Under the pieces are notes generated by a model. It ran no database searches. It was not told where the DNA came from and saw only the letters and a program-made list of their open reading frames with translations. A program made the translations under genes and the position numbers. From Scyliorhinus canicula (lineage: Eukaryota), in NCBI RefSeq assembly GCF_902713615.1, contig NC_052161.1, positions 2,252,892 to 2,316,891 on the forward strand: a stretch of DNA of 64,000 nucleotides. The letters run 5' to 3'. Below, piece by piece: positions 3,800-64,000 of this stretch. How positions within the stretch are numbered: position 1 is the stretch's first letter; each line of letters begins with the position of its first letter.

Positions 3800-3829
3800 C
3801 TGAAATGATAGGAGCAGTTGTTACCAATC

Positions 3830-4945: not shown

Positions 4946-4981
4946 AACCCCCCCCCCAAAAAAAACATCACGCACCTCTCC

Positions 4982-5404: not shown

Positions 5405-5711
5405 AGAACATAGAGTGCAGAAGGAGGCCATTCGGCCCATCGAGTCTGCAAGACACACTTCAGCCCTCACTTCCACCCTATCCCCACAACCCAATAACCC
5501 CATCTAACCTTTTTTTTGGTCACTAATGGCAATTTATCATGGCCAATCCACCTAACCTGCACGTCTTTGGACTGTGGGAGGAAACCGGAGCACCGGGAGG
5601 AAACCCACGCAGACACAGGGAGAATGTGCAGATTCCGCACAGTGACCCAGCGGGGAATCAAAGCTGGGACCCTGGCGCTGTGAAGCCACAGTGCGAGCCA
5701 CCGTGCTGCCC
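5405..5711 (-). mobile_element. V-SINE with CR1-like tail
   Basis: head/core plus gatgggccgaatggcctcc tail. Confidence 0.8.
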
Positions 5712-5834
5712 TAAAGCAATAGTGTTACACCGCAGATACAGAAACTGTTGCACACAGACACTTTTCACTGTACCTTGGTACACGTGACAATAAACATAAA
5801 CACATGTACAGATGAGCAGAGGTGAATCACTCAC

Positions 5835-6041
5835 ACGTGAATAGGCAAAACTCCCATCTCCCAGCTGAAAGATAACGCCAACTGCTTTGTGGTAGCGCAG
5901 CACTGAGCACTCCTCCAGAACCTCACCAATCCCATGTATGCCTGGCTGCTGGAACACAGCCCCAGGCTGCAGGAAGAGGGGCCGCAGTGTCAGGTGCACA
6001 GACTTTGCATCCGGCTGCACATACAGAACACAGGCTCTCAC
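5835..6041 (-). CDS. PDCD11: PDCD11 exon (VRACVLYVQP...SFAYSR)
   Basis: 207 nt, ttccag/GTGAGT, phase 0-0. Confidence 0.92.
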
Positions 6042-6524
6042 CTGGAAGAGAAACACAATCTTGTGATTTATTGCAGAGAGAACAGCAACAACACAGACAG
6101 GAAACATGGAAAAGCAGCAAATCCTAAATAAAATCCAATACACAATAGTTTTTTGCGTTTGGGCTGTGTGTGGGGGCTTCTCCCTCCGTGACGGGTCTCT
6201 TGTTTATAACGGAATTAACCCTCCCCCCCCGCCGATCCCGGGTTATGTACGGGAGCTGGGGGTGTCCCAGTGAGACCCCTCTTGTTCTGTTTGTCCACGT
6301 TTCCGAAGAGAGGATGTCATTGATGGTGTTGGGCAGGACTGGAGGTGGTGTTACCAAGTTTAACAAGACACAACCAAGAGACCAGCTGTTTATTAGAATC
6401 TGTCTCTCTTTATTGCCCAGATGTAAAACATGTTAAACACTTAATGAGGCTCATTTCAGCTCCTTCCGCCCAGTTGTTGGGCACCCTGTGTGTTTCTGCG
6501 TTACAGCTGCTTTATCAAACTAAC

Positions 6525-6632
6525 CTTCTGACCCTTGCGGTATGTCCCTACTTTCTGTGGGTCCAGATGCATGAAATCGACAGAACCAGTCAAACCGGAC
6601 AGGAACTGGAGAACCAGGCCATGTAAAGTCAC
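6525..6632 (-). CDS. PDCD11: PDCD11 exon (VTLHGLVLQFLSGLTGSVDFMHLDPQKVGTYRKGQK); not in ORF track
   Basis: ttttacag/GTTAGT, 108 nt, phase 0-0, VDFMHLDP motif as in RRP5. Confidence 0.9.
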
Positions 6633-6744
6633 CTGTAAAATAAAATTATAATGAGGGTCTAGTCATAAATCAACCATCTCGATAGGAGTTCAAATCAAAT
6701 CAGTGCACCTAAAGATGACTGCATAGGACACACACACACAGATT

Positions 6745-8752
6745 GAGAGGGAGCGAGGCAGGCAGAGAGGGAGCGAGGCAGGCAGAGAGGGAGCGAGGCA
6801 GGCAGAGACAGAGGGGGAGCGAGGCAGGCAGAGACAGAGAGGGAGCGAGGCAGGCAGAGACTGAAAGGGAGCGAGGCAGGCAGAGACAGAGAGAGCGACA
6901 GGCAGAGACAGAGAGGGAGCGAGGCAGGCAGAGACAGAGAGCGAGCGACAGGCAGAGACAGAGAGGGAGCGAGGCAGGCAGAGACAGAGAGCGAGCGACA
7001 GGCAGAGACAGAGAGGGAGCGAGGCAGGCAGAGACAGAGAGGGAGCGAGGCAGGCAGAGACAGAGAGGGAGCGAGCGACAGGCAGAGACAGAGAGGGAGC
7101 GACAGGCAGAGACAGAGAGAGCGACAGGCAGAGACAGAGAGGGAGCGACAGGCAGAGACAGAGAGGGAGCGACAGGCAGAGACAGAGAGAGCGACAGGCA
7201 GAGACAGAGAGAGCGACAGGCAGACAGAGGGAGCGACAGGCAGACAGAGGGAGCGACAGGCAGAGACAGAGAGAGCGACAGGCAGAGACAGAGAGAGCGA
7301 CAGGCAGAGACAGAGAGAGCGACAGGCAGAGACAGAGAGAGCGACAGGCAGAGACAGAGAGAGCGACAGGCAGAGACAGAGAGAGCGACAGGCAGAGACA
7401 GAGAGAGCGACAGGCAGAGACAGAGAGAGCGACAGGCAGAGACAGAGAGAGCAACAGGCAGAGACAGAGAGAGCGACAGGCAGAGACAGAGAGAGCGACA
7501 GGCAGAGACAGAGAGAGCGACAGGCAGAGACAGAGAGAGCGACAGGCAGAGACAGAGAGAGCGACAGGCAGAGACAGAGAGCGACAGGCAGAGACAGAGA
7601 GAGCGACAGGCAGAGACAGAGAGAGCGACAGGCAGAGACAGAGAGAGCGACAGGCAGAGACAGAGAGAGCGACAGGCAGAGACAGAGAGAGCGACAGGCA
7701 GAGACAGAGAGAGCGACAGGCAGAGACAGAGAGAGCGACAGGCAGAGACAGAGAGAGCGACAGGCAGAGACAGAGAGAGCGACAGGCAGAGACAGAGAGA
7801 GCGACAGGCAGAGACAGAGAGAGCGACAGGCAGAGACAGAGAGAGCGACAGGCAGAGACAGAGAGAGCGACAGGCAGAGACAGAGAGAGCGACAGGCAGA
7901 GACAGAGAGAGCGACAGGCAGAGACAGAGAGAGCGACAGGCAGAGACAGAGAGAGCGACAGGCAGAGACAGAGAGAGCGACAGGCAGAGACAGAGAGAGC
8001 GACAGGCAGAGACAGAGAGAGCGACAGGCAGAGACAGAGAGAGCGACAGGCAGAGACAGAGAGAGCGACAGGCAGAGACAGAGAGAGCGACAGGCAGAGA
8101 CAGAGAGAGCGACAGGCAGAGACAGAGAGAGCGACAGGCAGAGACAGAGAGAGCGACAGGCAGAGACAGAGAGAGCGACAGGCAGAGACAGAGAGAGCGA
8201 CAGGCAGAGACAGAGAGAGCGACAGGCAGAGACAGAGAGAGCGACAGGCAGAGACAGAGAGAGCGACAGGCAGAGACAGAGAGAGCGACAGGCAGAGACA
8301 GAGAGAGCGACAGGCAGAGACAGAGAGAGCGACAGGCAGAGACAGAGAGAGCGACAGGCAGAGACAGAGAGCGACAGGCAGAGACAGAGAGCGACAGGCA
8401 GAGACAGAGAGCGACAGGCAGAGACAGAGAGCGACAGGCAGAGACAGAGAGCGACAGGCAGAGACAGAGAGCGACAGGCAGAGACAGAGAGCGACAGGCA
8501 GAGACAGAGAGCGACAGGCAGAGACAGAGAGCGACAGGCAGAGACAGAGAGCGACAGGCAGAGACAGAGAGCGACAGGCAGACAGAGAGAGCGACAGGCA
8601 GAGACAGAGCGACAGGCAGAGACAGAGAGAGCGACAGGCAGAGACAGAGAGAGCGACAGGCAGAGACAGAGAGAGCGACAGGCAGAGACAGAGGGAGCGA
8701 CAGGCAGAGACAGAGAGAGCGACAGGCAGAGACAGAGAGAGCGACAGGCAGA
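6745..8752. repeat. 20-22-bp purine-rich minisatellite (gagacagagagagcgacaggca)n
   Basis: direct tandem repeat. Confidence 0.97.
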
Positions 8753-9269
8753 TTGAAAGAGCAAGTTAGAGAGACACACACACAGTGAGGGAGGCGCGCA
8801 CACTTTTTCAATGAGTGAACAGGTTCACTATACAATGTTATCAGTGATCACTTGCAGGTGCCTTCTGCCCCTCCAACCAAAGATTTGAGCTGCAAAGTCT
8901 TTCTAGGACATGAAACGTAAACGCTGTTGGTCCACCTCCACAGATGCTGAGTTTTTGCAGCATTTTCTATTATTTGAGGGAGTGTGTGAGGTGCCTGCAC
9001 CACAACTATTATGAAAGTTGGGCAGCCATTTCACTGAATCAGACAAACTTTGGTGAAGGTGGTTGTCTTTTGGTTCATCAGGTTTGATCTGTGGATCCCA
9101 CAGTCCTGGGGCCTTCCGTCCTCCCCTTGAACTCCAGCACCAACAGTGAGATTCAGTCTCTCATCACCAACCTGTAAAAACAGTCTTTGCCCTTTCACCC
9201 TCCCTTCACTTCGATAATCTTTAACCTTCACTGCTGCATTAATACAAGGAAAGTCTTTAATCATCACTA

Positions 9270-15148: not shown

Positions 15149-15648
15149 NNNNNNNNNNNNNNNNNNNNNNNNNNNNNNNNNNNNNNNNNNNNNNNNNNNN
15201 NNNNNNNNNNNNNNNNNNNNNNNNNNNNNNNNNNNNNNNNNNNNNNNNNNNNNNNNNNNNNNNNNNNNNNNNNNNNNNNNNNNNNNNNNNNNNNNNNNNN
15301 NNNNNNNNNNNNNNNNNNNNNNNNNNNNNNNNNNNNNNNNNNNNNNNNNNNNNNNNNNNNNNNNNNNNNNNNNNNNNNNNNNNNNNNNNNNNNNNNNNNN
15401 NNNNNNNNNNNNNNNNNNNNNNNNNNNNNNNNNNNNNNNNNNNNNNNNNNNNNNNNNNNNNNNNNNNNNNNNNNNNNNNNNNNNNNNNNNNNNNNNNNNN
15501 NNNNNNNNNNNNNNNNNNNNNNNNNNNNNNNNNNNNNNNNNNNNNNNNNNNNNNNNNNNNNNNNNNNNNNNNNNNNNNNNNNNNNNNNNNNNNNNNNNNN
15601 NNNNNNNNNNNNNNNNNNNNNNNNNNNNNNNNNNNNNNNNNNNNNNNN
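15149..15648. other. Assembly gap (500 N) flanked by poly-G/G-rich sequence
   Basis: run of N. Confidence 1.
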
Positions 15649-25669: not shown

Positions 25670-26479
25670 CTAACGGAGAAAGACAAACCAGTTAGCGAGA
25701 CTGCTCATACTGGGACTGAGAGCAACACACTTCCCGTAGCACAGCCAATCTCAGAAAAGGCTAGAAATTTTATGTATGTGTATCTTGATGTATAAAAATC
25801 AAATCGTAGAGTAAATGCCCTGAGAGATGGAAATCTCCTTGACTGCCCTGAGCTACAACAAACTGGTCTTGTGTGTAGAAGTGTACAGGGCTGTATGATG
25901 AATTCACTGCTGTGCTCCGAAAGCTAGGTGATTTGAAACAATCCTGTTGGACTTTAACCTGGTGTTGTAAGACTTCTTACTGTTTTCAGGAAGAGTTCCA
26001 GAGACTCTCAAAACTCTGAGAGAAAACATTTCTCCTCAGCTCTGTCTGAAATGGGTGACTACTTACTTTTAAACAGTGACCCCCCAGTTCTAGATTCTTC
26101 AACAAGAGGAAACATCCTCTCCACATTCGCCCTGTCAACACCCGTCAGGATCTTAAAGGCTTTAAGTCACCTCTTACTCTTCTAAATTCCAACAGATACA
26201 AATCAAACCTTTCCTCATGTGACAACCAGCCCATTCCTGATATTAGTCTAATGAACCTTCTTTGAACTGCTTCTAATGTATAACAATAATTGCTTATTGT
26301 CACACGTAGGCTTCAATGAAGTTACTGTGAAGTTACTGTGGCCCCTAGTCGCCACATTCCGGTGCCTGTTCGGGGAGGCCGGTACAGAAATTGAACCGTG
26401 CTGCTGCCTTGATCTGCATTTCAAGCCAGCAATTTAGCCCAGTGTGCTAAACCAGCCTTTATTTACATATTTCCTTAAA

Positions 26480-39612: not shown

Positions 39613-39641
39613 AGTTATGACATGGTTATTGGGGGTCTCAC

Positions 39642-40261
39642 TTGTGGAAGAAGTGGCGGGCTTCCCTCTCATGCTGGTTGTAGACCAGCTCCAGGTAGAG
39701 GTGCACGAAGACGGGGTAGAGCAGGGTGGAGAGCTCGGCTTTGAAGGCGTCCAGCGCCGTCTCGATGAAGCCCTTGAGGCCGGTGTAATACTCCTCGTAC
39801 AGGCTGGGGTCGCCCTCGTTGCTGTAGGCCGACAGCACCGAGCTAACGTCGGGCTGGTGGACCGAGTCTGAGCCGCGCTGGCCGGCCGCCCGAGACTCGT
39901 CCAGGCTGTCCTGCAGGTTGGCCTCCTTCCGCAGGATCTCCTCCGCCTCCCTGAAGTGGTTCTTCTTGAGGAACTGCAGCACGGCCAGCAGGGTCTGCTT
40001 GTCAGGGAGGTCGGTGCCGGCCGGAGGCTGGGCCGGGGCCTGGGCCGGAGGCTGGGCCGGGGCCTGGGCCGCCGAGCCTGGCCGCTGGCTCTCAGCCGGG
40101 CTCTCAGCCGGCTCCACCTTCAGGGTGGGTGAGGGAGAGGGAGAGGGAGAGGGAGTGGGGACCGGGACCGGGGACGGAGCCGGGGAGGCGGTCGGGCCCG
40201 AGGCCGGGGACGGAGCCGGGGCCTCGCTTGGCGCCGCGGGCGGCTCCGGCACCGCCGCCAT
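39642..40261 (-). CDS. TAF5: TAF5 exon 1 (MAAVPEPP..., LisH, start of NTD2)
   Basis: aaaATGG Kozak context at 40261, 620 nt, GTGAGA donor; joined CDS 2226 nt = 741 aa. Confidence 0.92.
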
Positions 40262-40420
40262 TTTGACAGCGTCTGGGATTCTTTGCGACACACGGCGCTC
40301 CTTTTAAACAGCGGTCGCCCCGCTTTACGGCAAGAGGGCAAACCGCCTCCGCTGCCGCCTCACGACAGTTTGGGCAAACTGCAAATCCGCTTTACGGACG
40401 AGTCCTCTCTTAAAGGGACA
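39700..40420. promoter_or_regulatory. TAF5: CpG island / TAF5 promoter-exon 1
   Basis: GC- and CpG-dense relative to flanks and spans the start codon; limits approximate. Confidence 0.7.
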
Positions 40421-43230: not shown

Positions 43231-43704
43231 CAGGGGTGGGCAAACTATGGCCCGTGGGCCGCATGCGGCCCGCCAAAGGTCTTTATGCGGCCCACCAAGA
43301 TCAAGTCCTCAAAAAAAATTTTTTAAATTTTTTTAAAAATTATTTTTTTATAAGGTTAATGGGGGGGGGGGGGGCTGTTGGGTTACTTACTGGTATAGGG
43401 TGGATACGTTGACTTGAGTAGGGTGATCATTGCTCGGCACAACATCGAGGGCCGAAGGGCCTGTTCTGTGCTGTACTGTTCTATGTTCTATATGAGGCGC
43501 CCAGAATCATAACCGGGTGAAGCGCCATTTTTGAAAAGTAGAGGAAAAGAGGGCTAAAGGCAGGATGCTGCCGGGAGAAGCGCTGAGGTATATGCCGCAC
43601 GCTAATTGGTTACAACCGGGACTATTAATTAATATACTATGCGGCCCTTTAAAATTGTGAATTTCTGAATGTGGCCCTTGCACGGAAAAGTTTGCCCACC
43701 CCTG
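43231..43704. mobile_element. hAT-type MITE, copy 2 (opposite orientation)
   Basis: TIR CAGGGGTGGGCAAACT; perfect 8-bp TSD ccttagtg. Confidence 0.92.
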
Positions 43705-43749
43705 CCTTAGTGTGTGTGTGGAGAGCCCAAAATATCACAGCGGGCCAGG

Positions 43750-46700
43750 GAGCCCCACAATGCTCAAATCCCCATACCCCACAATGCCCAGGCCCTAATA
43801 CCCCACAGTGCCTCAACCCCTATACCAGGCTATGCCTGAACCCTAATACCCCAATATGCCCGAACCCCAATACCACACAATCCCTGAACCCTCAAACCCC
43901 AATATGCCTGAACCCCAATACTTCACAATGCCTGAACCCCAATACCCCACACCTAAACCCCAATACCCCACAACACCCAAACCACAATATCCCACAATGC
44001 CTGAACCCCAATACCCCACAATGCCTGAACCCCAATACCCCACAAATGCCTGAACCCCAATACCCCACAACTGAACCTCAATACCCCACAATGCCTGAAC
44101 CCCAATACCCCACAATGCCTGAACCCCAATACCCCACAATGCCTGAACCCCAATACCCCACAATGCCTGAACCCCAATACCCCACAATGCCTGAACCCCA
44201 ATACCCCACAATGCCTGAACCTCAATACCCCAGAATGCCTGAACCCCAATACCCCACAATGCCTGAACCCCAATACCCCACAACTGAACCCCAATACCCC
44301 ACAATACTGAAACCCTAATACCCCACTGCACCCGAACCCCAATACCCCACAGCACCCGAACCCCAATACCCCACAGCACCCGAACCCCAATACCCCACAA
44401 TACCCAAATCCCAATACCCCACAATACCCAAACCCCAATACCCCACAATACCTGAACCCCAATACCCCACAATACCTGAACCCCAATACCCCACAATACC
44501 CGAACCCCAATATCCCACAATACCTGAACCCCAATACCCCACAATACCCGAACCCCAATATCCCACAATACCAAACCCCAATACCCCACAGCACCTGAAC
44601 CCAATACCCCACAACACCCAAACCCCAATATCCCACAATACCCAAACCCCAATACCCCACAATACCCGAACCCCAATACACCACAATACCAAACCCCAAT
44701 ATCCCACAATACCTGAACCCCAATACCCCACAACACCCGAACACCAATACCCCACAATAACCGAACCCCAATACCCCACAACACCTGAACACCAATACCC
44801 CACAATACCCAATACCCCAATACCCCACGATACCCGAACCCCAATACCCCACGATACCCGAACTCCAACATCCCATAATACCCCGGAACCCAATACTCCA
44901 CAATACTGAAACCCCAATACCCCACAATACCCGACCACCAATACCAACAATACCTGAACCCCAATACCCCACAATCCCAAACCCCAATACCCCACAATGC
45001 CCAAACCCCAATATCCCACAATATCCAAACCCCAATACCCCACAATACCCGAACCCCAATACACCACAATACCAAACCCCAATACCCCACAGCACCTGAA
45101 CCCCAATACCCCACAACACCCAAACCCCAATATCCCACAATACCCAAACCCCAATACCCCACAATACCCGAACGCCAATACACCACAATACCAAACCCCA
45201 ATATCCCACAATACCTGAACCCCAATACCCCACAATACCCGAACTCCAATACCCCACAATAACCGAACCCCAATACCCCACAACACCCGAACACCAATAC
45301 CCCACAATACCCAATACCCCAATACCCCACGATACCCGAACCCCAATACCCCACGATACCCGAAGTCCAACATCCCATAATACCCGGAACCCAATACTCC
45401 ACAATACTGAAACCCCAATACCCCACAATACCCGACCACCAATACCAACAATACCTGAACCCCAATACCCCACAATCCCAAACCCCAATACCCCACAATG
45501 CCCAAACCCCAATACCCCACAATACATGAACCCCAATACCCCACAATAACCGACCCCCAATACCCCACAATACATGAACCCCAATACCCCACAATAACCG
45601 ACCCCCAATACCCCACAATACCCAAACCCCAATACCCCACAGCACCCAAACCCCAATACCCCACAATACCCAAACCCCAATACCCCACAATACCAAACCC
45701 CAATACCCCACAATACCTGAACCCCAATACCCCACAATGCCCAAATCCCAATACCCCACAATACTGAAACCACAATACCCACAACAGAACCCCAATACCT
45801 CATAATACCCAAACCCCAATACCCCACAATACCCGAACCCCAATACCTCATAATACCCAAACCCCAATACCCCACAATACCCGAACCCCAATATCCCACA
45901 ATGCCTGAACCCCAATACTCCACAATACCCAAATCCCAATACCCCACAATACCCAAATCCCAATACCCCACAACAGAACCCCAATACACCACAATACTGA
46001 AACCCTAATACCCCACAGCACCCAAACCCCAATACCCCACAACACCCAAATCCGAATACCCCACAATACCCAAACCCCAATACCCCACAACAGAACCCCA
46101 ATACACCACAATACTGAAACTCTAATACCCCACAGCACCCGAACCCCAATACCCCACAACACCCAAACCCCAATATCCCACAATATCCAAACCCCAATAC
46201 CCCACAATACCCAAACCCCAATACCCCACAATACCCGAACCCCAATACACCACAATACCAAACCCCAATACCCCACAGCACCCGAACCCCAATACCCCAC
46301 AACACCCAAACCCCAATATCCCACAATACCTGAACCCCAATACCCCACAATGCCCAAATCCCAATACCCCACAATACTGAAACCCCAATACCCACAACAG
46401 AACCCCAATACCTCATAATACCCAAACCCCAATACCCCATAATACCCGAACCCCAATACCCCACAATACCCGAACCCCAATACCCCACAATAACTGAACC
46501 CCAATAGTCCACAACACCCGAACCCCAATACCCCAAAATAGCTGAATCCCAATACCCCACAGCCCCCAAACCCCAACACCCCACAACTGAACCCCAATAC
46601 CTCACAACACCTGAACCCCAATACCCCACAATACTGAAACCCAATACCCCACAATACCCAAATCCCAATACCCCACAATGCCCGAACTCCAACACCCCAT

Positions 46701-47868
46701 AATACCCGAACCCCAATACCCCACAATAACCGAACCCCAATACCCCACAATACCTGAACCCCAATACCCTACAACATCCGAACCCCAATACCCGACCCCC
46801 AATACCAACAATACCCGAACCCCAATACCCCACAATACCAAACCCCAATATCCCACAATACCTGAACCCCAATACCCCACAATACCAAACCCCAGTATCC
46901 CACAATGCCCAAACCCCAATACCTCACAACACCCGAACCCCAATACCCCACAATACCCAAACCCCAATACCCCACAATACCAAACCCCAATATCCCACAA
47001 TACTGAAACCCCAATACCCCACAATGCCTGAACCCCAATACCCCACAATACCCGAACCCCAATACCCCACAATACCCGAACCCCAATACCCCACAATACC
47101 CGAACCCCAATACCCCACAATACCCGAACTCCAATACCCCACAATACCCAAATCCCAATACCCCACAATACCCGAACCCCAATACCCCACAATACCCGAA
47201 CCCCAATACCCCACAATACCCAAACCCCAATACCCACCATGCCCAAAGCCCAATACCTCACAACACCCGAACCCCAATACCCCACAATACCCGAACCCCT
47301 ATATCCCACAATACCCAAACTGCAATACCCCACAATACCCAAACCCCAATACCCCACAATACCCAAACCCCAATACCCCACAATACCCAAACCCCAATAC
47401 CCCACAGTACCCAAACCCCAATACCCCTCAGCACCCGAACCCCAATACCCCACAGCACCCAAACCCCAATACCCCACAACACCCAAACCCCAATACCCCA
47501 CAGCACCCGAACCCCAATACCCCACAACACCCAAACCCCAATACCCCACAGCACCCAAACCCCAATACCCCACAGCACCCAAACCCCAATACCCCACAAC
47601 ACCCAAACCCCAATACCCCACAGCACCCGAACCCCAATACCCCACAATACCCAAACCCCAATACCCCACAACACCCGAACCCCAATACCCCACAATACCC
47701 GAACCCCAATACCCCACAATACCCAAACCCCAATACCCCACAATACCCAAACCCCAATACCCCACAATACCCAAACCCCAATACCCCACAATACCCAAAC
47801 CCCAATACCCCACAATACCCAAACCCCAATACCCCACAATACCCGAACCCCAATACCCCACAATACCC
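43750..47868. repeat. ~22-bp C-rich minisatellite, 4.1 kb
   Basis: ccccaataccccacaatacccgaa-type unit. Confidence 0.97.
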
Positions 47869-49089
47869 TCCCAGCTCTGTACATTCCTATTTATCGCACC
47901 TGTAGCATTGATTTTTTTTCACTGTAGGAGACAATTAATCAGCCAAGGTGTCACCAAGTTTTATGTTAAAGAAAATACAAACTAAATTATAAAAAGTGCA
48001 ATTTGTTTTTTTATTTATCTCTCAAGGTTAATGGTGGTGCTCCACACCATGAAAACATGTCACGTAGGAAAGAAAAATGTGTTGGTTCATGATAAGTGGA
48101 AAAAAATATGATTAAGTGGAATTAATAATTAACTCATTTGCATAATATTGGATCAAATTTTCTCTGTCAGCCATGAACTCAATTCCCCTTCCCAGCCAAT
48201 GTCTCAGTCTGGGTCGGATTGTTTAGAAACTTATCTCATTTGTTTTGGGATGTGGGCATTGCTGCCGACGCCATCATTTGTTGCCCATCCCTAGTTGCCC
48301 TTGGGAAGGTGGTGGTGAGCTGCCTTCTAGAACCGTTACTGTCCGTTTAGATGGAATATCATCAGGAATGTTCACTGATGATTGCATAATGTTCAGCACC
48401 ATTCACATCTCCTCAGATACTGAGCCAGTTCATGCCTGGGTACAACACGACCAAGACTGGGGTTACCATTAACCACTGGACTAGCCATATAAAAACTGTG
48501 GCTACAAGAGGAGGTCAGAGGCGACAAATAATAATAATCTTTATTCGTGTCACAAGTAGGCTTACATTAACGCTGCAATGATGTTACTGTGAAAATAACT
48601 CACCTCCTGACCCTCCAAAGCCTGTCCACCATCTACAAAGCACAAGTCAGGAGTGTGATGGAATACTCTCCACTTGCCTGGATGAGTGCAGCTCCAACAA
48701 CACTCAAGAAGCTCAACACCATCCAGGACAAAGCAGCCCTCGCTTATGGTGTAGGTACATCCACAATGCTGTTAGGGAGGGAGTTCCAGGATTTTGACCC
48801 AGCGACAATGAAGGATCAGCGACGTATTTCCAAGACAGGATGCTGTGACTTGGTGAGGAACTTGCAGGTGGCAATGTTCCCACGTATCTGCTGCCCCTGT
48901 CCTTGTAGATTTTTGAGGTCACAGGCTGGGAAGATGCTGTTAAAGGAGCCTCAATTAGTTGGTGCAGTGCAAACAGTAGATGGTACACACGGCTGCCATT
49001 GATAGTGGAGGGAATGAATGTTTAAGGTGATGAATAAAGTCAACCAAGCAGGCTGCTTTGTCGTGGATGGTGTCAAGCTTCTTGAGTGT

Positions 49090-52000
49090 TGTTGGAGATG
49101 CACTCGTATGGCTAGTCCAGTCCAGATGTTGAGAAGGTGCGGGGCTGGAGGAGGTTTTGTGGGTGAAGGTGGAGGCAGGGTTTTTGTGAGGGGTCAGGGT
49201 TGCGGGTGTTGGCGATGGCTCTGCTCTTTTTGCCCCGGGGAGGTATCCGGGGAGTCCGGTCGTGGTGGTCATGCTGAAATTATGGAGGCAGTTTCGGCTG
49301 CGCTTTAAGTTGGGAGCAGCATTGAAACTGATGCTGATTCGGGGGAACAATGGGTTTGAGCCCGGGAGGGTGGATGGGAGGTTTCGGGGATGGGAGGAGT
49401 GAGGGGCGGTGGAAAGAAAGGATCTGTTCCTCGAGGATGGTTCTGGAGGAGGGGGTGGGGTGTGGGTGCTGGAGGAGGGGGTGTGAGGTACTGGAGGAGG
49501 GGGTGTGGGTGCTGGAGGAGGGGGTGTGGGTGCTGGAGGAGGGGGTGTGGGTGCTGGAGGAGGGGGTGTGGGTGCTGGAGGAGGGGGTGTGGGTGCTGGA
49601 GGAGGGGGTGTGGGTGTGGGTGCTGGAGGAGGGGGTGTGGGTGCTGGAGGAGGGGGTGTGGGTGACGTGAGGGAAAGGTTTCAGTTACATGCTGGTTGGG
49701 ATTTTGTGAAAATGGTCTGTGTGACCTTTCCAGTGACACCGCCCCCTCTTTGCTGGAGGGGGTGATGTCAGTGATGGGGTTGGGGGGGCGGGGGTCATCT
49801 CGGCGATTTATGGGAGGATTTTGGAGGAGGATAGGGCATCTCTGGAGGGGGTTAAGGCCAAGTGGGAGGAGGAGCTGGGGATGGCGCTGGAGGAGGGGGT
49901 GGGGTGTGGGTGCTGGAGGACGGGGTGTGGGTGCTGGAGGAGGGGGTGGGGTGTGGGTGCTGGAGGAGGGGGTGGGGTGTGGGCGCTGGAGGAGGGGGTG
50001 TGGGTGCTGGAGGAGGGGGTGGGGTGTGGGTGCTGGAGGAGGGGGTGGGGTGTGGGCGCTGGAGGAGGGGGTGTGGGTGCTGGAGGAGGGGGTGGGGTGT
50101 GGGTGCTGGAGGAGGGAGTGGGGTGTGGGTGCTGGAGGAGGGGGTGGGGTGTAAGGTGCTGGAGGAGGGGGTGGGGTGTGAGGTGCTGGAGGAGGGGGTG
50201 GGGATGGTGCTGGAGGAGGGGGTGGGGTGTGGGTGCTGGAGGAGGGGGTGGGGTGTGGGTGCTGGAGGAGGGGGTGGGGTGTGGGTGCTGGAGGAGGGGT
50301 GGGGTGTGAGGTGCTGGAGGAGGGGGTGGGGTGTGAGGTGCTGGAGGAGAGGGTGTGGGTGCTGGAGGAGGGGGTGGGGTGTGGGTGCTGGAGGAGGGGT
50401 TGTGGGTGCTGGAGGAGGGGGTGTGGGTGCTGGAGGAGGGGGTGTGGGTGCTGGAGGAGGGGGTGTGGGTGCTGGAGGAGGGGGTGTGGGTGCTGGAGGA
50501 GGGGGTGTGGGTGCTGGAGGAGGGGGTGTGGGTGCTGGAGGAGGGGGTGGGGATGGTGCTGGAGGAGGGGGTGGGGTGTGAGGTGCTGGAGGAGGGGGTG
50601 GTGTGTGGGTGCTGGAGGAGGTGGTGGGGTGTGAGGTGCTGGAGGAGGGGGTGGGGTGTGAGGTGCTGGAGGAGGGGGTGTGAGGTGCTGGAGGAGGGGG
50701 TGGGGTGTGGGTGCTGGAGGAGGGGGTGTGGGTGCTGGAGGAGGGGGTGTGAGGTGCTGGAGGAGGGGGTGGGGTGTGAGGTGCTGGAGGAGGGGGTGGG
50801 GTGTGAGGTGCTGGAGGGGGGGTGTGAGGTGCTGGAGGAGGGGGTGGGGTGTGGGTGCTGGAGGAGGGGGTGGGATGTGAGGTGCTGGAGGAGGGGGTGG
50901 GGTGTGAGGTGCTGGAGGAGGGGGTGGGGTGTGGGTGCTGGAGGAGGGGGTGGGGTGTGAGGTGCTGGAGGAGGGGGTGGGGTGTGAGGTGCTGGATGAG
51001 GGGGTGTGAGGTGCTGGAGGAGGGGGTGGGGTGTGGGTGCTGGAGGAGGGGGTGTGGGTGTGGGTGCTGGAGGAGGGGGTGGGGTGTGAGGTGCTGGAGG
51101 AGGGGGTGTGAGGTGCTGGAGGAGGGGGTGGGGTGTGAGGTGCTGGAGGAGGGGGTGGGGTGTGAGGTGCTGGAGGAGGGGGTGTGAGGTGCTGGAGGAG
51201 GGGGTGGGGTGTGAGGTGCTGGAGGAGGGGGTGGGGTGTGAGGTGCTGGAGGGGGGGTGTGAGGTGCTGGAGGAGGGGGTGGGGTGTGGGTGCTGGAGGA
51301 GGGGGTGGGGTGTGAGGTGCTGGAGGAGGGGGTGTGGGTGCTGGAGGAGGGGGTGTGGGTGCTGGAGGAGGAGCTGGGGATGGTGCTGGAGGAGGGGGTG
51401 GGGTGTGAGGTGCTGGAGGAGGGGGTGTGGGTGTGGGTGCTGGAGGAGGGAGTGGATGCTGGAGGAGGGGGTGTGGGTGCTGGAGGAGGGGGTGTGGGTG
51501 TTGGAGGAGGGGGTGGGGTGCTGGAGGAGGGGGTGTGGGCGCTGGAGGAGGAGGTGGGGTGTGAGGTGCTGGAGGAGGGGGTGTGAGGTGCTGGAGGAGG
51601 GGGTGGGGTGTGGGTGCTGGAGGAGGGGGTGGGGTGTGGGTGCTGGAGGAGGGGGTGTGGGTGCTGGAGGAGGGGGTGTGAGGTCCTGGAGGAGGGGGTG
51701 TGGGTGCTGGAGGAGGGAGTGGGGTGCTGCGGAGAATGAATGCCCCAACCCCATGTGCGAGGCTGGGTTTGATACAGTTAACGGTCGTGCACAGAGCACA
51801 GCTGATGAAATTGGGGATGAGCCGGCAGTTGGAGGGAGTGAAGGATATTTGTGGGCAGTGTGGGAGGGGCCCGGACAATCACACACACGTGTTCTGGTCC
51901 TGCCTAAAGCTGGAGAAGTTTTGGGGGGTATCTTTCAGCACCATGTCTGCGATCCTGCGCATGGATTTAGAGCTCAGTCCCCTGGGGGCCATATCCGGGA

Positions 52001-52110
52001 TCTTGGACTTGCCAGAGTTGGGGATAGGAGCGGGGGACAGATGTTTTAGCCTTTGCCTCATTTGCTCACAGGCGGGTCCTGTTGGGGTGGAGGTCAGCTT
52101 CTCTCCCACC
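49090..52110 (+). mobile_element. Decayed L1-like ORF2 C-terminal fragment inflated by an internal minisatellite
   Basis: KWEEELG...; CGQC...HVFWSC zinc-knuckle motif at about 51850-51905. Confidence 0.7.
49440..51725. repeat. 21/26-bp G-rich minisatellite (two blocks, 49440-49665 and 49880-51725)
   Basis: gtgctggaggagggggtg... Confidence 0.95.
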
Positions 52111-52525
52111 CCCCAACCCTGTCCGGGTTAAATGGCGGAGCAGATCCAGGGACGGAGTGGCTACTCCTGCACCTTGTTCATATGTTCATATTTCAAATTC
52201 TTCTTTTAAATTCCACCACGGCCTCGATCCATCCCAGTCTTTGTAACCCCCTCCAACCCTACAAAGCTCTGATTGCAGGATCTTGCCCTTCTCCCCTGCC
52301 TCCCCCTCACTGCTGGCAATGAGTTTTCAGGCAACTAGGTGGACTGGACGAGTGCCACGTTGCTGTCATTTTAAGCTTCACACCTCCCTCCTGACCCTTG
52401 TGCACCCAGTTCTTGCTGGGTGAAGGGGCAAGAGGTTAAAATTGGGGCATTAATGATACTGGATCCTGACCTTGTGGGAATGACAGTGAGGGGTCAGGGC
52501 TATGTGTCTGGCATTGTCCAGAGTG

Positions 52526-52656: not shown

Positions 52657-53167
52657 GTGAGTCTTTCCTGTAACATATGTCACTTTTGCCAATGACTAAA
52701 AGACAGTGAAGTTACTACTTGGGAGCGTGCGGAAGGTTCGGGTCGATAGTTAGAACAGCAGCACTAGCAGGAGAGCCGGTAACCAGAGGTTTATCATCGA
52801 TAATTAAATAACCAGCATGGAGATGAGGAAAGAGATGGGAAAGTTATTGTGTCAGGAAGGCGATGTCTGAAAGGACGGTGGAGGCAGATTCAACAGTAAC
52901 TTTCAAAATGGATAAAGACTTGGAAGGAAAAGAAAACATTTGCTGGGTGATGAGGAACATGCAGGAAAGTGGGACTGATGGGATAGACCGAGAATAGGCA
53001 TGATGGGCCAAATGGCCGCTTGTGCTGATTATTCTATGATTCGATAACTTGGAAAAACAGCAAAATAAAGGGAGCAATAAAGATTAGAGTGGACTGCATT
53101 GCCGAAAGGAATTTTTAATCTTATATTCCTGAAAAGGGAATATGGGAGGGGGGGGGGGGGGGGGGGG

Positions 53168-54862
53168 CGAGGATGGAGGGAGGGTGAGGATGGAGGGGGT
53201 GAGGATTGAGGGCAGTGAGGATGGAGGGAGTGAGGATGGAGGGAGGGTGAGGATGGAGGGAGGGTGAGGATGGAGGGGGTGAGGATGGAGGGGTGAGGAT
53301 GGAGGGGGTGAGGATGGAGGGGGTGAAGATGGAGGGGGTGAGGATGGAGGGGGTGAGGATGGAGGGGGTGAGGATGGAGGGGGTGAGGATGGAGGTGGTG
53401 AGGATGGAGGGGGTGAGGATGGAGGGGGTGAGGATGGAGGGGGTGAGGATGGAGGGGGGGTGAGGATGGAGGTGGTGAGGATTGAGGGCGGTGAGGATGG
53501 AGGGGGTGAGGATGGAGGGGGTGAGGATGGAGGGGGATGAGGATGGAGGGGGTGAGGATGGAGGGGGTGAGGATGGAGGGGGTGAGGATGGAGGGGGTGA
53601 GGATGGAGGGGGTGAGGATGGAGCGGGTGAGGATGGAGGGGGTGAGGATGGAGGGGGTGAGGATAGAGGGGGTGAGGATGGAGGGGGTGAGGATGGAGGG
53701 AGTGAGGATGGAGGGGGTGAGGATGGGGGTGAGGATGGAGGGGGTGAGGATGGAGGGGGTGAGGATGGAGGGGGTGAGGATGGAGGGTGTGAGGATGGGG
53801 GTGAGGATGGAGGGGGTGAGGATGGAGGGGGTGAGAATGGAGGGTGTGAGGATGGGGGTGAGGATGGAGGGGGTGAGGATGGAAGGGGTGAGGATGGGGG
53901 TGAGGATGGAGGGTGAGGATGGAGGGCGGTGAGGATGGGGGTGAGGATGGAGGGGGTGAGGATGGGGGTGAGGATGGAGGGGGTGAGGATGGGGAGTTTA
54001 GGATGAAGGGGTTTAGGATGGAGGGAGGCGAAGATGGAGAGAGTGAAGACTGAGGGCGGTAAGGATTGAGGGTGGTGAAGATTGAGGGCAGTGAGGATGG
54101 AGGGGTGAGGATGGAGGGGGTGAGGATAGAGGGGGTGAGGATGGAGCGGGTGAGGATGGAGGGGGTGAGGATGGAGTGGGTGAGGATGGAGGGGGTGAGG
54201 ATGGAGGGGGTGAGGATGGAGGGAGTGAGGATGGAGGGGGTGAGGATGGGGGGGTTAGGATGGAGGGGGTGAGGATGGAGGGTGAGGATGGAGGGTGAGG
54301 ATGGAGGGTGAGGATGGGGGTTTAGGATGAAGGGGGTTAGGATGGAGGGAGGCGAAGATGGAGAGAGTGAAGACTGAGGGCGGTAAGGATTGAGGGTGGT
54401 GAGGATTGAGGGCAGTGAGGATGGAGGGGGTGAGGATGGAGGGGGTGAGGATGGAGGGGGTGAGGATAGAGGGGGTGAGGATAGAGGTGGTGAGGATGGA
54501 GGGGGTGAGGATGGAGGGGGTGAGGATGGAGGGGGTGAGGATGGAGGGGGTGAGGATGGAGGGGTGAGGATGGAGGGGGTGAGGATGGAGGGGGTGAGGA
54601 TAGAGGGGGTGAGGATAGAGGGGGTGAGGATTGAGGGCGGTGAGGATGGTGGGGGTGAGGATGGAGGGGTGAGGATGGAGGGGGTGAGGATGGAGGGAGT
54701 GAGGATGGAGGGGGTGAGGATAGAGGGGGTGAGGATTGAGGGCGTTGAGGATAGAGGGGGTGAAGATTGAGGGCGGTGAGGATAGAGGGGGTGAGGATTG
54801 AGGGCGGTGAGGATAGAGGGGGTGAGGATTGAGGGCGATGAGGATTGAGGGCAGTGAGGATG
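53168..54862. repeat. 15-bp G-rich minisatellite (gaggatggagggggt)n
   Basis: direct tandem repeat; lies in the putative lipase intron 1. Confidence 0.96.
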
Positions 54863-55323
54863 AAATGCCCTCTGAAATAGTCGAGCAAGACCCAGTCCAA
54901 GGGCAATTTGGGATGGACAATAAATGCTGGTTAAAAGCAAATTACTGCGAATCTGAAACGAAAGAGAAAATGCTGGAAAATCTCAGCAGGTCTGTCAGCA
55001 TCTGTAGGGAGAGAAAAGAGCCAATGTTTCGAGTCCAGATGACCCTTTGTCAAAGCTAACAGGCAGAGACTATGCTGGTCTCACCTGCGTCACCCACCCC
55101 ATTTATGAATTTAAAAAATCAACCTCAGATTGAAGCTGTGACAATGAATGAGTAATAACTGAAAGGCTCCGTTAAGCACACGGACATTTCCACCACATTA
55201 CACGGTTCGAAGCTAATATGTTTCCAAAGATGAAAGTAATTTTGTAAATGAGGAATATTCTGTGTATTACACTTGTTGCTGATTGGTGCTGTGATGATCC
55301 TGTTAACTACATTTCTCTTCCAG

Positions 55324-57700: not shown

Positions 57701-60014
57701 ACAATCATTGGTATAGAATCACAGAATCACAGAATAATACAGTGCAGAAAAGGCCCTTCGGCCCATCGAGTCTGCACCTACACATGAAAGCCCCTGACCT
57801 GCCCACCTAATCCCATTTGCCAGCACTTGGCCCATAGCCTTGAATGTTATGACGTTGCCAAGTCCTCATCCAGGTACTTGTTAAAGGATGTGAGGCAACC
57901 TGCCTCTACCACCCTCCAGGCAGTGCGTTCCAGACCGTCACCACCCTCTGGGTCAAAGAGTTTTTCCTGAAGTCTCCCCTAAACCTCCCACCCCTCACTT
58001 TGAACTTTTGCCTCCTCGTAACTGACCCTTCAACTGAGGGTAACAGCTGCTCCCTATCCGCCCTGTCCATGCCCCTCAGAATCCTGTCCACCTCGATCAG
58101 GTCACCCCTCAGTCTTCTCTGCTCCAGCTAAAACAACCCAAGCCTATCCAACCTCTCTTTGTAACTGAAATGTTCCATCCCAGCAACATCCTGGTGAATC
58201 CCCTCTGCACCCCCTCCAGTACAATCACATCCTTCCGATATTGTCTTGACTAGAATTACACACAGTGCTCCAGCTGTGACCTCACCAAAGCTCGATACAA
58301 CTCCAATATGACCGCCCTGCTTGTGTAATCTATGCCCCGATTGATAAAGCGAGTATCCCAGATGCCTTTTTCACCTCCCTATTAACCTGCCCTTCTGCCA
58401 TCGGAGATCTATGGACAAACACACCAAGGTCCCTTTCTTCCTCGGAACTTCCCAGTGTCAGGCCATTCAGTGAATACTTCCTTGTCAAATTACTCCTTCA
58501 AACGTTTATCATCTCAATTTTCAGGGTTAAATTTCATCTGCCACTTATCCGCCCATTTGACCATCCCGTCGATTTCCTCCCAAGACTCTCAGCCTCACTG
58601 TTAATCACCTGGTTAATCTTTGTGTCATCCGTAAACTTACTGATCCTACCCCCCACATAGTCATCTATGTCATTTATATAAATGACAAACAATAGGGGGC
58701 CCAGCACAGATCCCTGTGGTACCCCACTGGACACTGGCTTCCATTCACTAAAGCAGCCGTCTGTCATCGCCCTCTGTCTCCTACAGCTCAGCCAATTATG
58801 AATCCACTGTATCAAGTTATCCCATATCCCAATGTGCATTTGCCTTCTTAATAGGTTTCCCATGTAACCTTGTCAAAGGCTTTGCTGAAATTCATGTAAA
58901 CCACATCAACTACACTACCCTCATCTATACACTTGGTTACATGCTCAAAAAAAATCTCAACCAAATTTGTTAGCCATGACCTCCCTCTGACAAAGCCATG
59001 CTGACTATTCCTGAACAAACCTTGCCTCTCCAAGTGGAGATAGATTCTCTCCTTCAGAATCTTCTCCAGTAGTTTCCCAACCACTGAAGTGAGACTCACT
59101 GGTCTGTAGATCCCTGGCTTATCTCTACGACCCTTCTTAAATAGTGAGACCACATTAGCTGTTCTCCAGTCCTCTAACACCTCCCCCGTGGCCAGAGAGG
59201 AATTAAAAATTTGGGTCAGAGCCCCTGCAATCTCTTCCCTTATCTCCTACAGCAGCCTGGGACAGAATTCCTCTGGACCTTGGAGATTTGTCTACTTTTA
59301 AGTCTGTCAACACCTCCAATACCTTATCCCGCAAACAAAGAACAAAGAAACGTACAGCACACGATCAGGCCCTTCGGCCCTCCAAGCCTGTGCTGACCAT
59401 GCTGCCCATCGAAATTAAAATCTTCTACACTTCCTGTGTCCGTATCCCTCTATTCCCATCCTATTCATGTATTTGTCAAGATGCCCTTAAACATCACTAT
59501 CGTCCCTGCCTCCACCACCTCCTACGGCAGCGAGTTCCAGGCACCCACTACCTTCTGTGTAAAAAACTTGCCTCGTACATCTCCTCTAAACCTTGCCCCT
59601 CGCACCTTAAACCTATGCCCCCTAGTAATTGACCCCTCTACCCTGGGAAAAAGCCTTTGACTATCCACTCTGTCTATGCCCCTCATAATTTTGTAGACCT
59701 CTATCATGTTGCCTCTCAACCTCCGTTGTTCCAGTGAGAACAAACCGAGTTTATTCAACCGCTCCTCATAGCTACTGCCCTCCATACCAGGCAACATCCT
59801 GGCAAATCTCTTCTGCACCCTCTCTAAAGCCTTCACATCCTTCTGGTAGTGTGGCGACCAGAATTGAACACCATACTCCAAGTGTGGCCTAACTAAGGTT
59901 CTATACAGCTGCAACATGACTTGCCAATTTTTATACTCAATGCCCCGGCCAATGAAGGCAAGCATGCCGTATGCCTTCTTGACTACCTTCTCCACCTGTG
60001 TTGCCCTTTTCAGT

Positions 60015-60266
60015 CATGATGTGGAGATGCCGGCGTTGGACTAGGGTGAGCACAGTAAGAAGTCTTACAACACCAGGTTAAAGTCCAACAGGTTTGTTTC
60101 AAACACGAGCTTTCGGAGCACGGCTCCTTCTTCAGGTGAATCTTGATTTCATTTCATTTCATTTTGGGATATTTGACATTCACCTGAAGAAGGAGCCGTG
60201 CTCCGAAAGCTCGTGTTTGAAACAAACCTGTTGGACTTTAACCTGGTGTTGTAAGACTTCTTACTG
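60015..60266. mobile_element. Penelope-like inverted-repeat element with hammerhead motifs
   Basis: perfect 92-bp IR 60050-60141/60178-60269; 13-bp TSD tgcccttttcagt (60002-60014, 60267-60279). Confidence 0.75.
60181..60215 (+). ncRNA. Minimal type-I hammerhead ribozyme motif (mirror copy on minus at 60104-60138)
   Basis: CAC-CUGAAGA-A-GGAGC(CGU)GCUCC-GAAA-GC-UC-GUG. Confidence 0.7.
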
Positions 60267-60632
60267 TGCCCTTTTCAGTGACAGATGGCAATAACGCCCT
60301 ATGGCAATATTGCTCCCTATTGCTCAATAACCTCACAGTCTCTCTGCCCTAGTTCCATAACCACCTCCTCATTCTCTCGGGTGAAGACAGATGTGAAATA
60401 TTCGTTCAACACCCCACCAATGTTCTCTGGCTCCACCCACAGATCTCCCCCTTGGTCTTCAATGGTCCCTACTCTTTCCCGATTATCCTCTTCCCATTAA
60501 CATACTTATAAAATATCTTGGGATTTTCCCTACTTTTACCAGTCAGAGCTCTCTCATATCCCTTCTTTGCCCTTCCTAATTGATTTCTTCAGCTCCATCC
60601 TGCACTTTCTGTACTCCACTAACTCCACTGGC

Positions 60633-61229
60633 AGGGGCTGGTTTAGCACACTGGGCTAAATCGCTGGCTTTTAAAGCAGACCAAGGCAGGCCAGCAGCAC
60701 GGTTCAATTCCCGTAATAGCCTCCCCGAACAGGCGCCGGAATGTGGCAACTAGGGGCTTTTCACAGTAACTTCATTTGAAGTCTACTTGTGACAATAAGC
60801 GATTTTCATTTCATTTCATTTTGGATATTTGACTAAGTTAAAGGTGCTATATGAACACACGTTGTTATTATATAACATACTGAAATATTTAACAAACTTA
60901 TCAGAAAACATGCAAGTTCCACTTGACTGAATCTGGGTCTGTAAACTCTGTTCGGATACCGAACACGAACCTCAAACAATTTTTAATTTGTAAAACAGTG
61001 AGGAAAGGATATTTCACCCCGGGAGCGATAACTCTGACTAATGGGTATCTGTTATGTTAAAATGAAATGAAAATCGCTTATTGTCACGAGTAGGCTTCAA
61101 ATGAAGTTACTGTGAAAAGCCCCTAGTCGCCACATTCCGGCGCCTGTTCGGGGAGGCTGGTACGGGAATCGAACCATGCTGCTGGCCTGCCTTGGTCTGC
61201 TTTACAAGCCAGCGATTTAGCCCAGTGCT
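60633..61229. mobile_element. Two type-2 SINEs tail-to-tail (60633-60820 plus; 61060-61229 minus); further pieces at about 20505-20610 and 26281-26457
   Basis: GGGGCTGGTTTAGCAC head, (TTTCA)n tail. Confidence 0.8.
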
Positions 61230-62193
61230 AAAAAGCAAACTTTAATTTAAACACTTTAGTTTAATTAAATTAATTAAACTTTAATTTAATTTAAAAATCC
61301 TTCTGTCTTGTCAGACTAAAATCCTCTAAAATCTTCTAACAGACTGCAAAGCTTCAGACATCCCTAGCTCCTCCCATTCATTATAGTTTCTTTATTTGTC
61401 CATGGGCATCGCTGGCTGGGCCGGCATTTATTGCCCATTCCTGAGGGCATTTAATAGTCAAGCGCATTGCTGTGGATCTAGAGTCACATGTCAGGGTAAG
61501 GATGGCAGATTTCCTTCCCTAAAGGGCATTAGTGAATCACAAGGGGTTTTACAACAATTGACAACGGTTTCCAGATTAATTTCCTTTTAATTCCAGATTA
61601 TTTTTTAATTGAATTCAAAATTCATTATCTGTCATTGTGGGATTCGAAACCAGAGCATTACTCTGGATCTCAGGAGTCCAGTGACAATCCCACGACGCCA
61701 CCAGCTCCCCGTATATAATCTGTATCCCATTAAGATGTTTCATGACCTGCTTAGCTAGAACTAAACACCATTCCCTCATAAATTATCTCCAGCAATCAAA
61801 ACAATAACCCATTAGCCATCTATATGTAAACAGTAAATGGTTAGAAACCATGGTTCCCTCACTTTTTATGCTTCATTAATTGCAGCTTTAGTAGACACAC
61901 TGCCCGGGTGTATTTTGAGTAAAGGTTTTTAATAACATTACTGACACGGATATGAAATATAATGCATAACAGTTTCTACATTCATCACACTAGCACAGTA
62001 ATATCATCCCACATGACCCAGACTGTGGGTACACTGCAGACTGGGACATGCTGCCGTCAGTTGGCACGATGTCATTCATACTGCAGGGGATGTATTTGAC
62101 ATTGTGGGAGGTACATTTCAGCCTGTGCATTTTATTGCCTTTCTCACTGACTCTCAATTATCTATCTCCTGTGAACACTACGTTTTGGTGAAG

Positions 62194-62348: not shown

Positions 62349-62512
62349 GTAGAGTCACTTTCATAAAGAACAACTGCATGAAGACAACTCCAACAGCAGT
62401 GAAACAACTCGCAGCAACTAGACTCTGCAAAACACATCTTGAATGCAACTTATTAAATGCTGCATTTCAGCAACACTGAGGCAGAGAACATAGAATATTC
62501 ACCAGAATAGCA

Positions 62513-64000
62513 CAGAGGGTCACTACTGAGGGAGTGCTGTACTGTCAGAGGGTCACTACTGAGGGAGTGCTGCACTGTCAGAGGGTCAGTACTGAGGGAG
62601 TGCTGCACTGTCAGAGGGTCAGTACTGAGGGTGTGCCGCACTGTCAGAGGGTCAGTACTGAGGGAGTGCCGCACTGTCAGAGGGTCAGTACTGAGGGTGT
62701 GCCGCACTGTCAGAGGGTCAGTACTGAGGGAGTGCCGCACTGTCAGAGGGTCAGTACTGAGGGAGTGCCGCACTGTCAGAGGGTCAGTACTGAGGGAGTG
62801 CCGCACTGTCAGAGGGTCAGTACTGAGGGAGTGCCGCACTGTCAGAGGGTCAGTACTGAGGGAGTGCCGCACTGTCAGAGGGTCAGTACTGAGGGAGAGC
62901 TGCACTGTCAGAGGGTCAGTACTGAGGGAGTGCTGCACTGTCAGAGGGTCAGTACTGAGGGAGTGCCGCACTGTCAGAGGGTCAGTACTGAGGGAGTGCC
63001 GCACTGTCAGAGGGTCAGTACTGAGGGAGTGCTGCACTGTCAGAGGGTCAGTACTGAGGGAGTGCTGCACTGTCAGAGGGTCAGTACTGAGGGAGTGCCG
63101 CACTGTCAGAGGGTCAGTACTGAGGGAGTGCCGCACTGTGAGAGGGTCAGTACTGAGGGAGTGCCGCACTGTCAGAGGGTCAGTACTGAGGGAGTGCCGC
63201 ACTGTCAGAGGGTCAGTACTGAGGGAGTGCCACACTGTCAGAGGGTCAGTACTGAGGGAGTGCCGCACTGTCAGAGGGTCAGTGCTGAGGGAGTGCCGCA
63301 CTGTCAGAGGGTCAGTACTGAGGGAGTGCCGCACTGTCAGAGGGTCAGTACTGAGGGAGTGCTGCACTGTCAGAGGGTCAGTACTGAGGGAGTGCCGCAC
63401 TGTCAGAGGGTCAGTACTGAGGGAGTGCCGCACTGTCAGAGGGTCAGTACTGAGGGAGTGCTGCACTGTCAGAGGGTCAGTACTGAGGGAGTGCTGTACT
63501 GTCAGAGGGTCAGTACTGAGGGAGTGCCGCACTGTCAGAGGGTCAGTACTGAGGGAGTGCCGCACTGTCAGAGGGTCAGTACTGAGGGAGTGCCGCACTG
63601 TCAGAGGGTCAGTACTGAGGGAGTGCTGCACTGTCAGAGGGTCAGTACTGAGGGAGTGCCGCACTGTCAGAGGGTCAGTACTGAGGGAGTGCCGCACTGT
63701 CAGAGGGTCAGTACTGAGGGAGTGCTGCACTGCCAGAGGGTCAGTACTGAGGGAGCGCCGCACTGTCAGAGGGTCAGTACTGAGGGAGTGCTGCACTGTC
63801 AGAGGGTCAGTACTGAGGGAGCGCCGCACTGTCAGAGGGTCAGTACTGAGGGAGTGCCGCACTGTGAGAGGGTCAGTACTGAGAGAGTGCCTCACTGTCA
63901 GAGGGTCAGTATTGAGGGAGTGCCTCACTGTCAGAGGGTCAGTATTGAGGGAGTGCCGCACTGTCAGAGGGTCAGTGCTGAGGGAGTGCCGCACTGTCAG
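62513..64000. repeat. 33-bp satellite, runs off the window
   Basis: gtcagagggtcagtactgagggagtgccgcact. Confidence 0.97.

Follow-up and report, generated by a model that had tools for sequence, protein, structure and literature searches.

The stretch of Scyliorhinus canicula contig NC_052161.1 analysed here (64,000 nt; positions 2,252,892 to 2,316,891 of the forward strand), referred to below as the window and numbered from its first letter, contains a perfect inverted repeat at 60002-60279 that carries a minimal hammerhead ribozyme motif on each strand. We consider it very probable that this structure is the product of one integration event of a shark Penelope-like element (PLE), which left two mirror-image terminal copies, each with a minimal hammerhead, inside a fragment of a long interspersed element (LINE). 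The features of the locus, and the related sites elsewhere in the window, are the following.

59341 to 60014, resuming at 60267 to 60282, minus strand: host sequence, a 5'-truncated LINE fragment, defined by comparison with its paralogs.
60002 to 60014, no strand: left copy of the putative target-site duplication (TSD), TGCCCTTTTCAGT, within the LINE fragment; a 13/13 direct repeat that matches the LINE paralogs at 32.8k and 41.8k.
60015 to 60049, minus strand: PLE 'tail' of 35 nt at the 3' end of the left copy, present on one side only, with a sharp family start at 60015-60017.
60050 to 60141, minus strand (sense): left arm, a PLE terminal copy; 100% inverted repeat, member of a very abundant family.
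60104 to 60138, minus strand: minimal type-I hammerhead motif of the left copy (descriptor match), with a predicted cut after the C opposite G60107.
60142 to 60177, plus strand: loop, 36 nt of filler, of which ~32 nt are copied from 60802-60833 (blastn and alignment).
60178 to 60269, plus strand (sense): right arm, a tail-less PLE terminal copy in the inverted repeat; the tail-less terminus of the family is at 60265 (mirror position 60054).
60181 to 60215, plus strand: minimal type-I hammerhead motif of the right copy (descriptor and fold), with a predicted cut after C60212.
60267 to 60279, no strand: right copy of the TSD, whose first 3 nt overlap the right arm.
60802 to 60833, plus strand: loop donor, the 3' tail of a short interspersed element (SINE) with 11 nt of its own flank (alignment).
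25896 to 25983, plus strand: a single, older family member whose hammerhead has decayed and which has the tail-less end (93% over 75 nt).

A repeat search recovered the inverted pair as two arms of 92 nt, 100% complementary, around a 36-nt spacer, together with the flanking 13-nt direct repeat. The 35 extra nucleotides on the left side have no counterpart on the right side, and the whole insert amounts to 252 bp with no open reading frame (ORF) between the repeats. Both copies share the inner end ATTCAC, and their sense strands diverge from the centre, that is, the copies are arranged head-to-head. The arms, loop, one-sided extension and flanking repeat had been described in an initial annotation made from the sequence alone, and all of these coordinates were verified. 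The 13-bp TSD proposed there was amended: the 13-nt direct repeat is present, but since the final 3 nt of the right arm, TGC (60267-69), double as the opening 3 nt of the repeat, the duplication is given here as 10-13 nt with a 3-nt microhomology.

On the plus strand of the right arm, the motif consists of CAC (60181-83), CUGAAGA (60184-90) and an extra unpaired A (60191), followed by a helix II of GGAGC (60192-96) and GCUCC (60200-04) around the loop CGU, and then by GAAA (60205-08), GC (60209-10), U (60211), C17 (60212) and GUG (60213-15). A mirror-image motif is found on the minus strand of the left arm. The minimal type-I core is complete (C3 U4 G5 A6 N7 G8 A9, G12 A13 A14, A15.1-U16.1 and H17), and the isolated motif was predicted to adopt helix I (3 bp) and helix II (5 bp) as its minimum-free-energy fold, at -9.5 kcal/mol. 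We scanned the window with a descriptor of minimal hammerhead ribozymes (min-HHRs) whose terms were CUGANGA, GAAA, U16.1 and H17, helices I and II of no fewer than 3 and 4 bp, respectively, with helix II closed by G10.1-C11.1, a bulge of 0-1 nt, and Watson-Crick pairing at 15.2-16.2. The descriptor matched exactly two sites in the 64-kb window, one in each arm, whereas 300 shuffled versions of the window (first-order Markov) gave no match. The observation is genuine and lies far outside what chance would give. The initial description of minimal, dimer-type hammerhead motifs on both strands was thus borne out. Its claim that each arm holds an intact core stands as far as the core letters, all of which are present; as a statement of activity it does not, as there was neither a covariance-model match nor any read end at the predicted cut.

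The listed DNA-contig differences that fall within the motif were located at N7 (60188, A/G), the first letter of loop II (60197) and H17 (60212, C/A). These are all free positions, and the letters are not linked between positions; the confinement of variation to free positions, among the listed differences, is only suggestive of constraint. The min-HHRs of metazoan PLEs are thought to act as dimers and show poor cleavage in vitro (PMC4209133; review PMC6765202), and dual min-HHRs on opposite strands, 100-700 bp apart, have already been published (PMC4209133).

The loop proved to be of local origin. For about 32 of its 36 nt, blastn found a same-strand counterpart at 60802-60833 (96.8% over 31 nt; E 5e-8 for a search of the window); the two differ in length by a single base at one or two homopolymer runs. 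This donor, located ~650 bp downstream, consists of the (ATTTC)n tail of a SINE and 11 nt of the flank of that SINE copy; an inverted copy of the donor SINE at 61060-61232 has the tail in common, and not the flank. Because the match includes flank unique to one SINE copy, the loop was copied from the neighbourhood. In addition, five 31-mers sampled across the arm-loop junctions were present in two sequencing runs only, X1 and X2. Since the loop is local and the junction words are rare, we conclude that the hairpin was assembled in situ and is not a transposing fold-back unit. The two SINEs themselves, of tRNA type, form an inverted pair (60642-60816 and 61060-61232; 94% over 175 nt, ~243 nt apart), a second structure prone to form double-stranded RNA (dsRNA) downstream of the hairpin.

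Reads and contigs were placed at a likeness of at least 90%, which captures the whole family, so that the signals described below are family-wide and not locus-specific. The summed depth on the arms and tail was ~10^6 in DNA runs of two organisms, as compared with 1.6-4 on the unique right flank, which places the element in a highly abundant repeat family. The depth of the tail was ~54% of that of the adjoining arm (runs X4 and X6), indicating that the tail is optional. At the tailed terminus, family homology begins sharply at 60015-60017, and at the tail-less terminus it stops at 60265 (mirror position 60054), with unrelated flanks beyond both; the right arm at this locus ends within 4 nt of the tail-less terminus of the family. 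Family depth declines toward the inner, hammerhead end, the copies being heavily 3'-biased, which fits a combination of 5' truncation and subfamily divergence. At this end, the sequence of other subfamilies is ...GGAGC-NNN-GCUCCGAAAGCUAGUGAUUCC (loose ends at 60099 and 60216-60220). The conserved core of the arm gave no match in exact-pattern scans of viral and metagenome contig collections.

The variants seen at the locus account for about half of the family depth in organism A versus ~1-14% in organism B, which points to a lineage-specific, recent subfamily. As judged from the identity of the arms and from subfamily variants that are common in organism A and nearly absent in organism B, the insertion is probably young. 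These data, together with the tail and the TSD, support the earlier proposal of a young non-coding Penelope-type element. The older copy at ~25896-25983 is a single arm (93% over 75 nt) with the tail-less end, and it runs into a decayed CUGAUGA box; an ATTCAC start considered for this copy was rejected, as the match was spurious on alignment. Many further head-to-head joints exist in the family, with variable breakpoints, some of them mirror-symmetric. We also observed that the sense strand of the tail (minus strand, 60015-60017) terminates in ...CACATCATG. In other PLEs, the ORF starts in or beside the pseudo-long terminal repeat (pLTR) and the tail; as a speculation, the terminal ATG of the tail might be the start codon of the family in tandem copies.

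Published PLE insertions show a closely similar arrangement. They are highly 5'-truncated, often adjoin an inverted 5'-truncated copy, and frequently carry a tail of 30-40 bp at one end only (PMC8557442). Rotifer PLEs have inverted pLTRs, a 31-bp tail and TSDs of 8-10 bp, and may capture unrelated sequence between the pLTRs within the TSDs (PMC3846280). In vitro, the PLE protein of Anolis cuts and extends both target strands, and reverse transcription starts at two adjacent internal sites, the interval between which corresponds to the tail (PMC11167929).

From the arrangement at the locus, we infer the following order of molecular steps. The endonuclease of the element would cut both strands of the LINE fragment with a stagger of 10-13 nt, giving rise to the TSD, and each 3' end would prime reverse transcription of the terminal ~92-127 nt of the PLE RNA. 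On the left, synthesis would start at the distal site and include the 35-nt tail; on the right, it would start at the internal, tail-less site, where a 3-nt microhomology with the target is available. Both cDNAs would stop at ATTCAC, probably a unit or template boundary, and the two copies would be joined via a short template jump copying ~32 nt from 650 bp downstream. The outcome would be a head-to-head perfect inverted repeat in which each copy inherits the family hammerhead. Beyond the single integration event itself, we put forward only tentatively, as a possibility that we would not bet on, the more specific hypothesis that the locus is an in vivo record of two-strand, two-start-site integration of the Anolis type, from a mini-template of ~92-127 nt with a defined 5' end, bridged via a local transcript or DNA.

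Several observations weigh against an origin by PLE integration, or against parts of it. That both inner ends coincide calls for a defined template end or for self-copying, between which the data do not decide; two other head-to-head family joints with the sense arm starting at 60179 or 60180 (60130->60179 in X4 and 60095->60180 in X1) lend some support to a defined template end. Filler drawn from a template less than 1 kb away is likewise typical of DNA-repair synthesis. The LINE fragment ends 3 nt past the TSD, which places the PLE insertion almost exactly on the 5' junction of the LINE itself, a coincidence for which we have no explanation. Among the window ORFs scanned, we found no ORF for a PLE-type reverse transcriptase (RT) with GIY-YIG, the only RT match being RVT_1 of the LINE. 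Since no autonomous RT/GIY-YIG partner with this terminus was retrieved, the assignment to PLEs is based on architecture and motif. Finally, the check with hammerhead covariance models suggested in the initial annotation was negative: Rfam hammerhead models run with Infernal gave no match at the gathering score in the whole window, nor at E<=10 in the 501-nt region 59900-60400 or in the isolated arm (60172-60232). This failure is expected because the motif is without a helix III hairpin. The sub-threshold Rfam matches were to miRNA-precursor models only, reflecting the long hairpin.

We next consider the RNA. The full transcript was predicted to fold as a single 92-bp perfect hairpin from either strand (-201 and -191 kcal/mol), and by geometry the antisense arm is transcribed first on either strand, in agreement with the initial annotation on both counts. 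Because the antisense arm comes first and the hairpin outcompetes the -9.5 kcal/mol hammerhead fold, the hammerheads are very probably masked passengers; on these folding predictions, the ribozymes are probably inert at this locus. The locus does seem to be transcribed. The size profile of run X1 is that of an RNA-seq assembly, its depth on the unique flank is 2,200-7,500, and a 140-nt X1 contig (depth ~2,200) corresponds to 60403-60542 without any difference; the loop-junction words in X1 and X2 likewise indicate transcription. No pile-up of read ends was seen anywhere on the stretch, the predicted cut included, in raw RNA reads from an oligo-dT library that report on the family as a whole, and an equivalent negative has been published for the Anolis PLE (PMC11167929).

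T>C differences at 60078, 60079, 60097, 60098, 60111, 60185 and 60239 were found in 15-40% of RNA reads (plus strand), as compared with at most 1% of DNA contig depth. They make up 7 of the ~10 RNA-enriched arm differences; the others include G>C at 60233 and G>A at 60193. The T>C differences may represent A-to-I editing of family hairpins, or a bias to a few expressed copies. Since the reads are family-wide and changes of non-editing type are RNA-enriched too, they are ambiguous as evidence of editing. The initial suggestion of processing by ADAR or Drosha thus found nothing in its favour beyond this ambiguous family-level signal.

Among the alternatives to a single PLE integration, the one that survives best, though we regard it as unlikely, is that the hairpin is a working RNA device, in which the antisense arm gates the ribozyme, or small RNAs or editing regulate a host transcript. 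The strong representation of the locus in the RNA-like runs X1 and X2, loop-junction words included, and the preponderance of T>C among the RNA-enriched differences would agree with such a role. However, the reads do not single out this locus, the RNA-enriched changes include G>C and G>A, no molecule ends accumulate at the cut site, and a structure of this kind is the default outcome of PLE integration; moreover, the insertion is too young to display conservation. The initial annotation treated the twin-hammerhead hairpin as a notable device; on the evidence, it is a routine by-product of PLE integration, and dual opposite-strand min-HHRs were already in the literature. The initial annotation had also placed the hairpin in a lipase pre-mRNA; we found no lipase signature, as a regular expression for GxSxG-type motifs gave no match in six frames, and a Pfam search of 20 ORFs returned only the RVT_1 domain of the LINE and a TAF5 N-terminal domain.

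A somewhat less probable alternative is that a single tailed PLE copy was inserted first, and that the second arm and the loop were added later by fold-back or template-switching repair, of the kind attributed to microhomology-mediated break-induced replication or fork stalling and template switching (MMBIR/FoSTeS) or to polymerase theta. A loop templated 650 bp away on the same strand, mirror-exact arms and the 3-nt microhomology at the right junction are all features that such repair could leave. It does not account for a 13-nt repeat that flanks the whole structure and not one arm, nor for a right arm ending no more than 4 nt from the usual tail-less terminus of the family, and head-to-head forms are common both in this family and in published PLEs.

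A scenario in which one PLE insertion was followed by another, independent one, adjacent to it and facing the other way, would be in keeping with the tendency of PLEs to insert into or beside existing copies (PMC6765202). We nevertheless rejected this explanation as very improbable, since there is a single pair of TSDs with no second duplication, and the arms are identical over 92 nt and have the inner end in common.

The chance that the locus is a fold-back element or miniature inverted-repeat transposable element (MITE) of the DNA-transposon type, with 92-bp terminal inverted repeats and moving as a unit, is slighter still; perfect terminal inverted repeats and a flanking duplication are what such an element would show, but the loop is local, its junction words are almost unique (two runs), single-arm copies exist, the tail is one-sided, copy depth is heavily 3'-biased, and a 13-nt TSD is atypical of DNA transposons. 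Equally improbable is a palindromic chimera produced in assembly: the five sampled junction words were in none of the DNA short-read runs, including those that contain 50-63% of the 1.1-kb locus, but X1 and X2 contain them, and the clean TSD, the tail and the canonical termini are marks of a biological origin.

In one X1 contig, 59988-60001 is followed directly by 60267 onward, an arrangement that corresponds to the empty-site form in an RNA-like run; no empty allele was seen in DNA, among the family-wide reads. This contig and the lack of junction words in DNA runs could reflect a segregating insertion, loss of the palindrome from DNA libraries made for short reads, or a skip by reverse transcriptase from one 13-nt repeat to the other.

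The host LINE is itself nested in an older repeat (58801-59328 and 60320-60607, equivalent to 3845-4617), and the ORF of a LINE paralog at 41549-42925 matches RVT_1 in Pfam (E 3.6e-35). Between the end of the LINE and the resumed older repeat, within 60267-60320, lie ~30 unassigned nt that contain ATGGCAATA twice. Elsewhere in the window, an ORF at 39641-40291 (minus strand) matches TFIID_NTD2 (E 1.5e-18) and has a LisH-like match, and corresponds to a TAF5 N-terminal exon. The assembly has a gap of 500 N at 15149-15648. Stretches free of stops in multiple frames occur at 6690-8835, 43671-47985, 49305-52131, 53084-54940 and 62453-63994; since they translate to short peptide repeats (SILTP/PSSPP, HSLSTDPLTVR), they represent large minisatellite arrays.

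The integration mechanism of the PLE class is still poorly understood, and the locus is a clean specimen of it: a 252-bp insert shows every signature of PLE integration at base resolution, namely termini, tail, TSD, microhomology and a filler with a traceable donor. If the two-start-site hypothesis is true and the insertion is segregating, twin insertions in this shark could be mined for the PLE integration mechanism. If the insertion is polymorphic and lies in a strongly transcribed region, it would offer a natural allele for how a vertebrate handles long perfect RNA hairpins (92 bp). For annotation, the 'twin hammerhead palindromes' of this shark are to be read as routine PLE scars and not as ribozyme devices.

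Compared with known systems, the locus is most like the endonuclease-containing (EN+) PLEs of the Penelope/Poseidon/Neptune type, with which it shares inverted terminal copies, a tail at one end, a putative TSD of 10-13 nt, a hammerhead in the terminal repeat and captured foreign sequence (PMC8557442, PMC3846280, PMC11167929). It is unlike them in its 252-bp insert with 92-nt repeats and no ORF between them, and in having captured 32 nt copied from 650 bp away. The min-HHRs of metazoan PLEs (Cervera and De la Pena 2014) have the same minimal type-I motif, and dual motifs on opposite strands were noted there; at this locus, in contrast, helix I is 3 bp versus 4-5 and helix II 5 bp versus 6-8, and the copies are complementary instead of tandem, pairing with each other instead of forming a dimeric ribozyme. 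Non-LTR (long terminal repeat) retrozymes are similarly non-coding, hammerhead-bearing and probably mobilised by PLEs (PMC7229834; bioRxiv 10.64898/2026.07.22.740005). They consist, however, of direct tandem repeats with canonical hammerheads and give circular RNAs, whereas the two minimal motifs here are an inverted pair. We therefore rejected membership in this class, and because the motifs are inverted, minimal and not tandem, cleavage could release no circularisable unit here. Inverted SINE pairs, such as the inverted Alus that serve as dsRNA and ADAR substrates, also place an inverted repeat in transcribed DNA with a long predicted RNA duplex; the repeat at this locus differs in being perfect, short-looped and of single-event origin. 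We regard the locus as a neat but unremarkable case of a known kind, and not as a novel ribozyme device.

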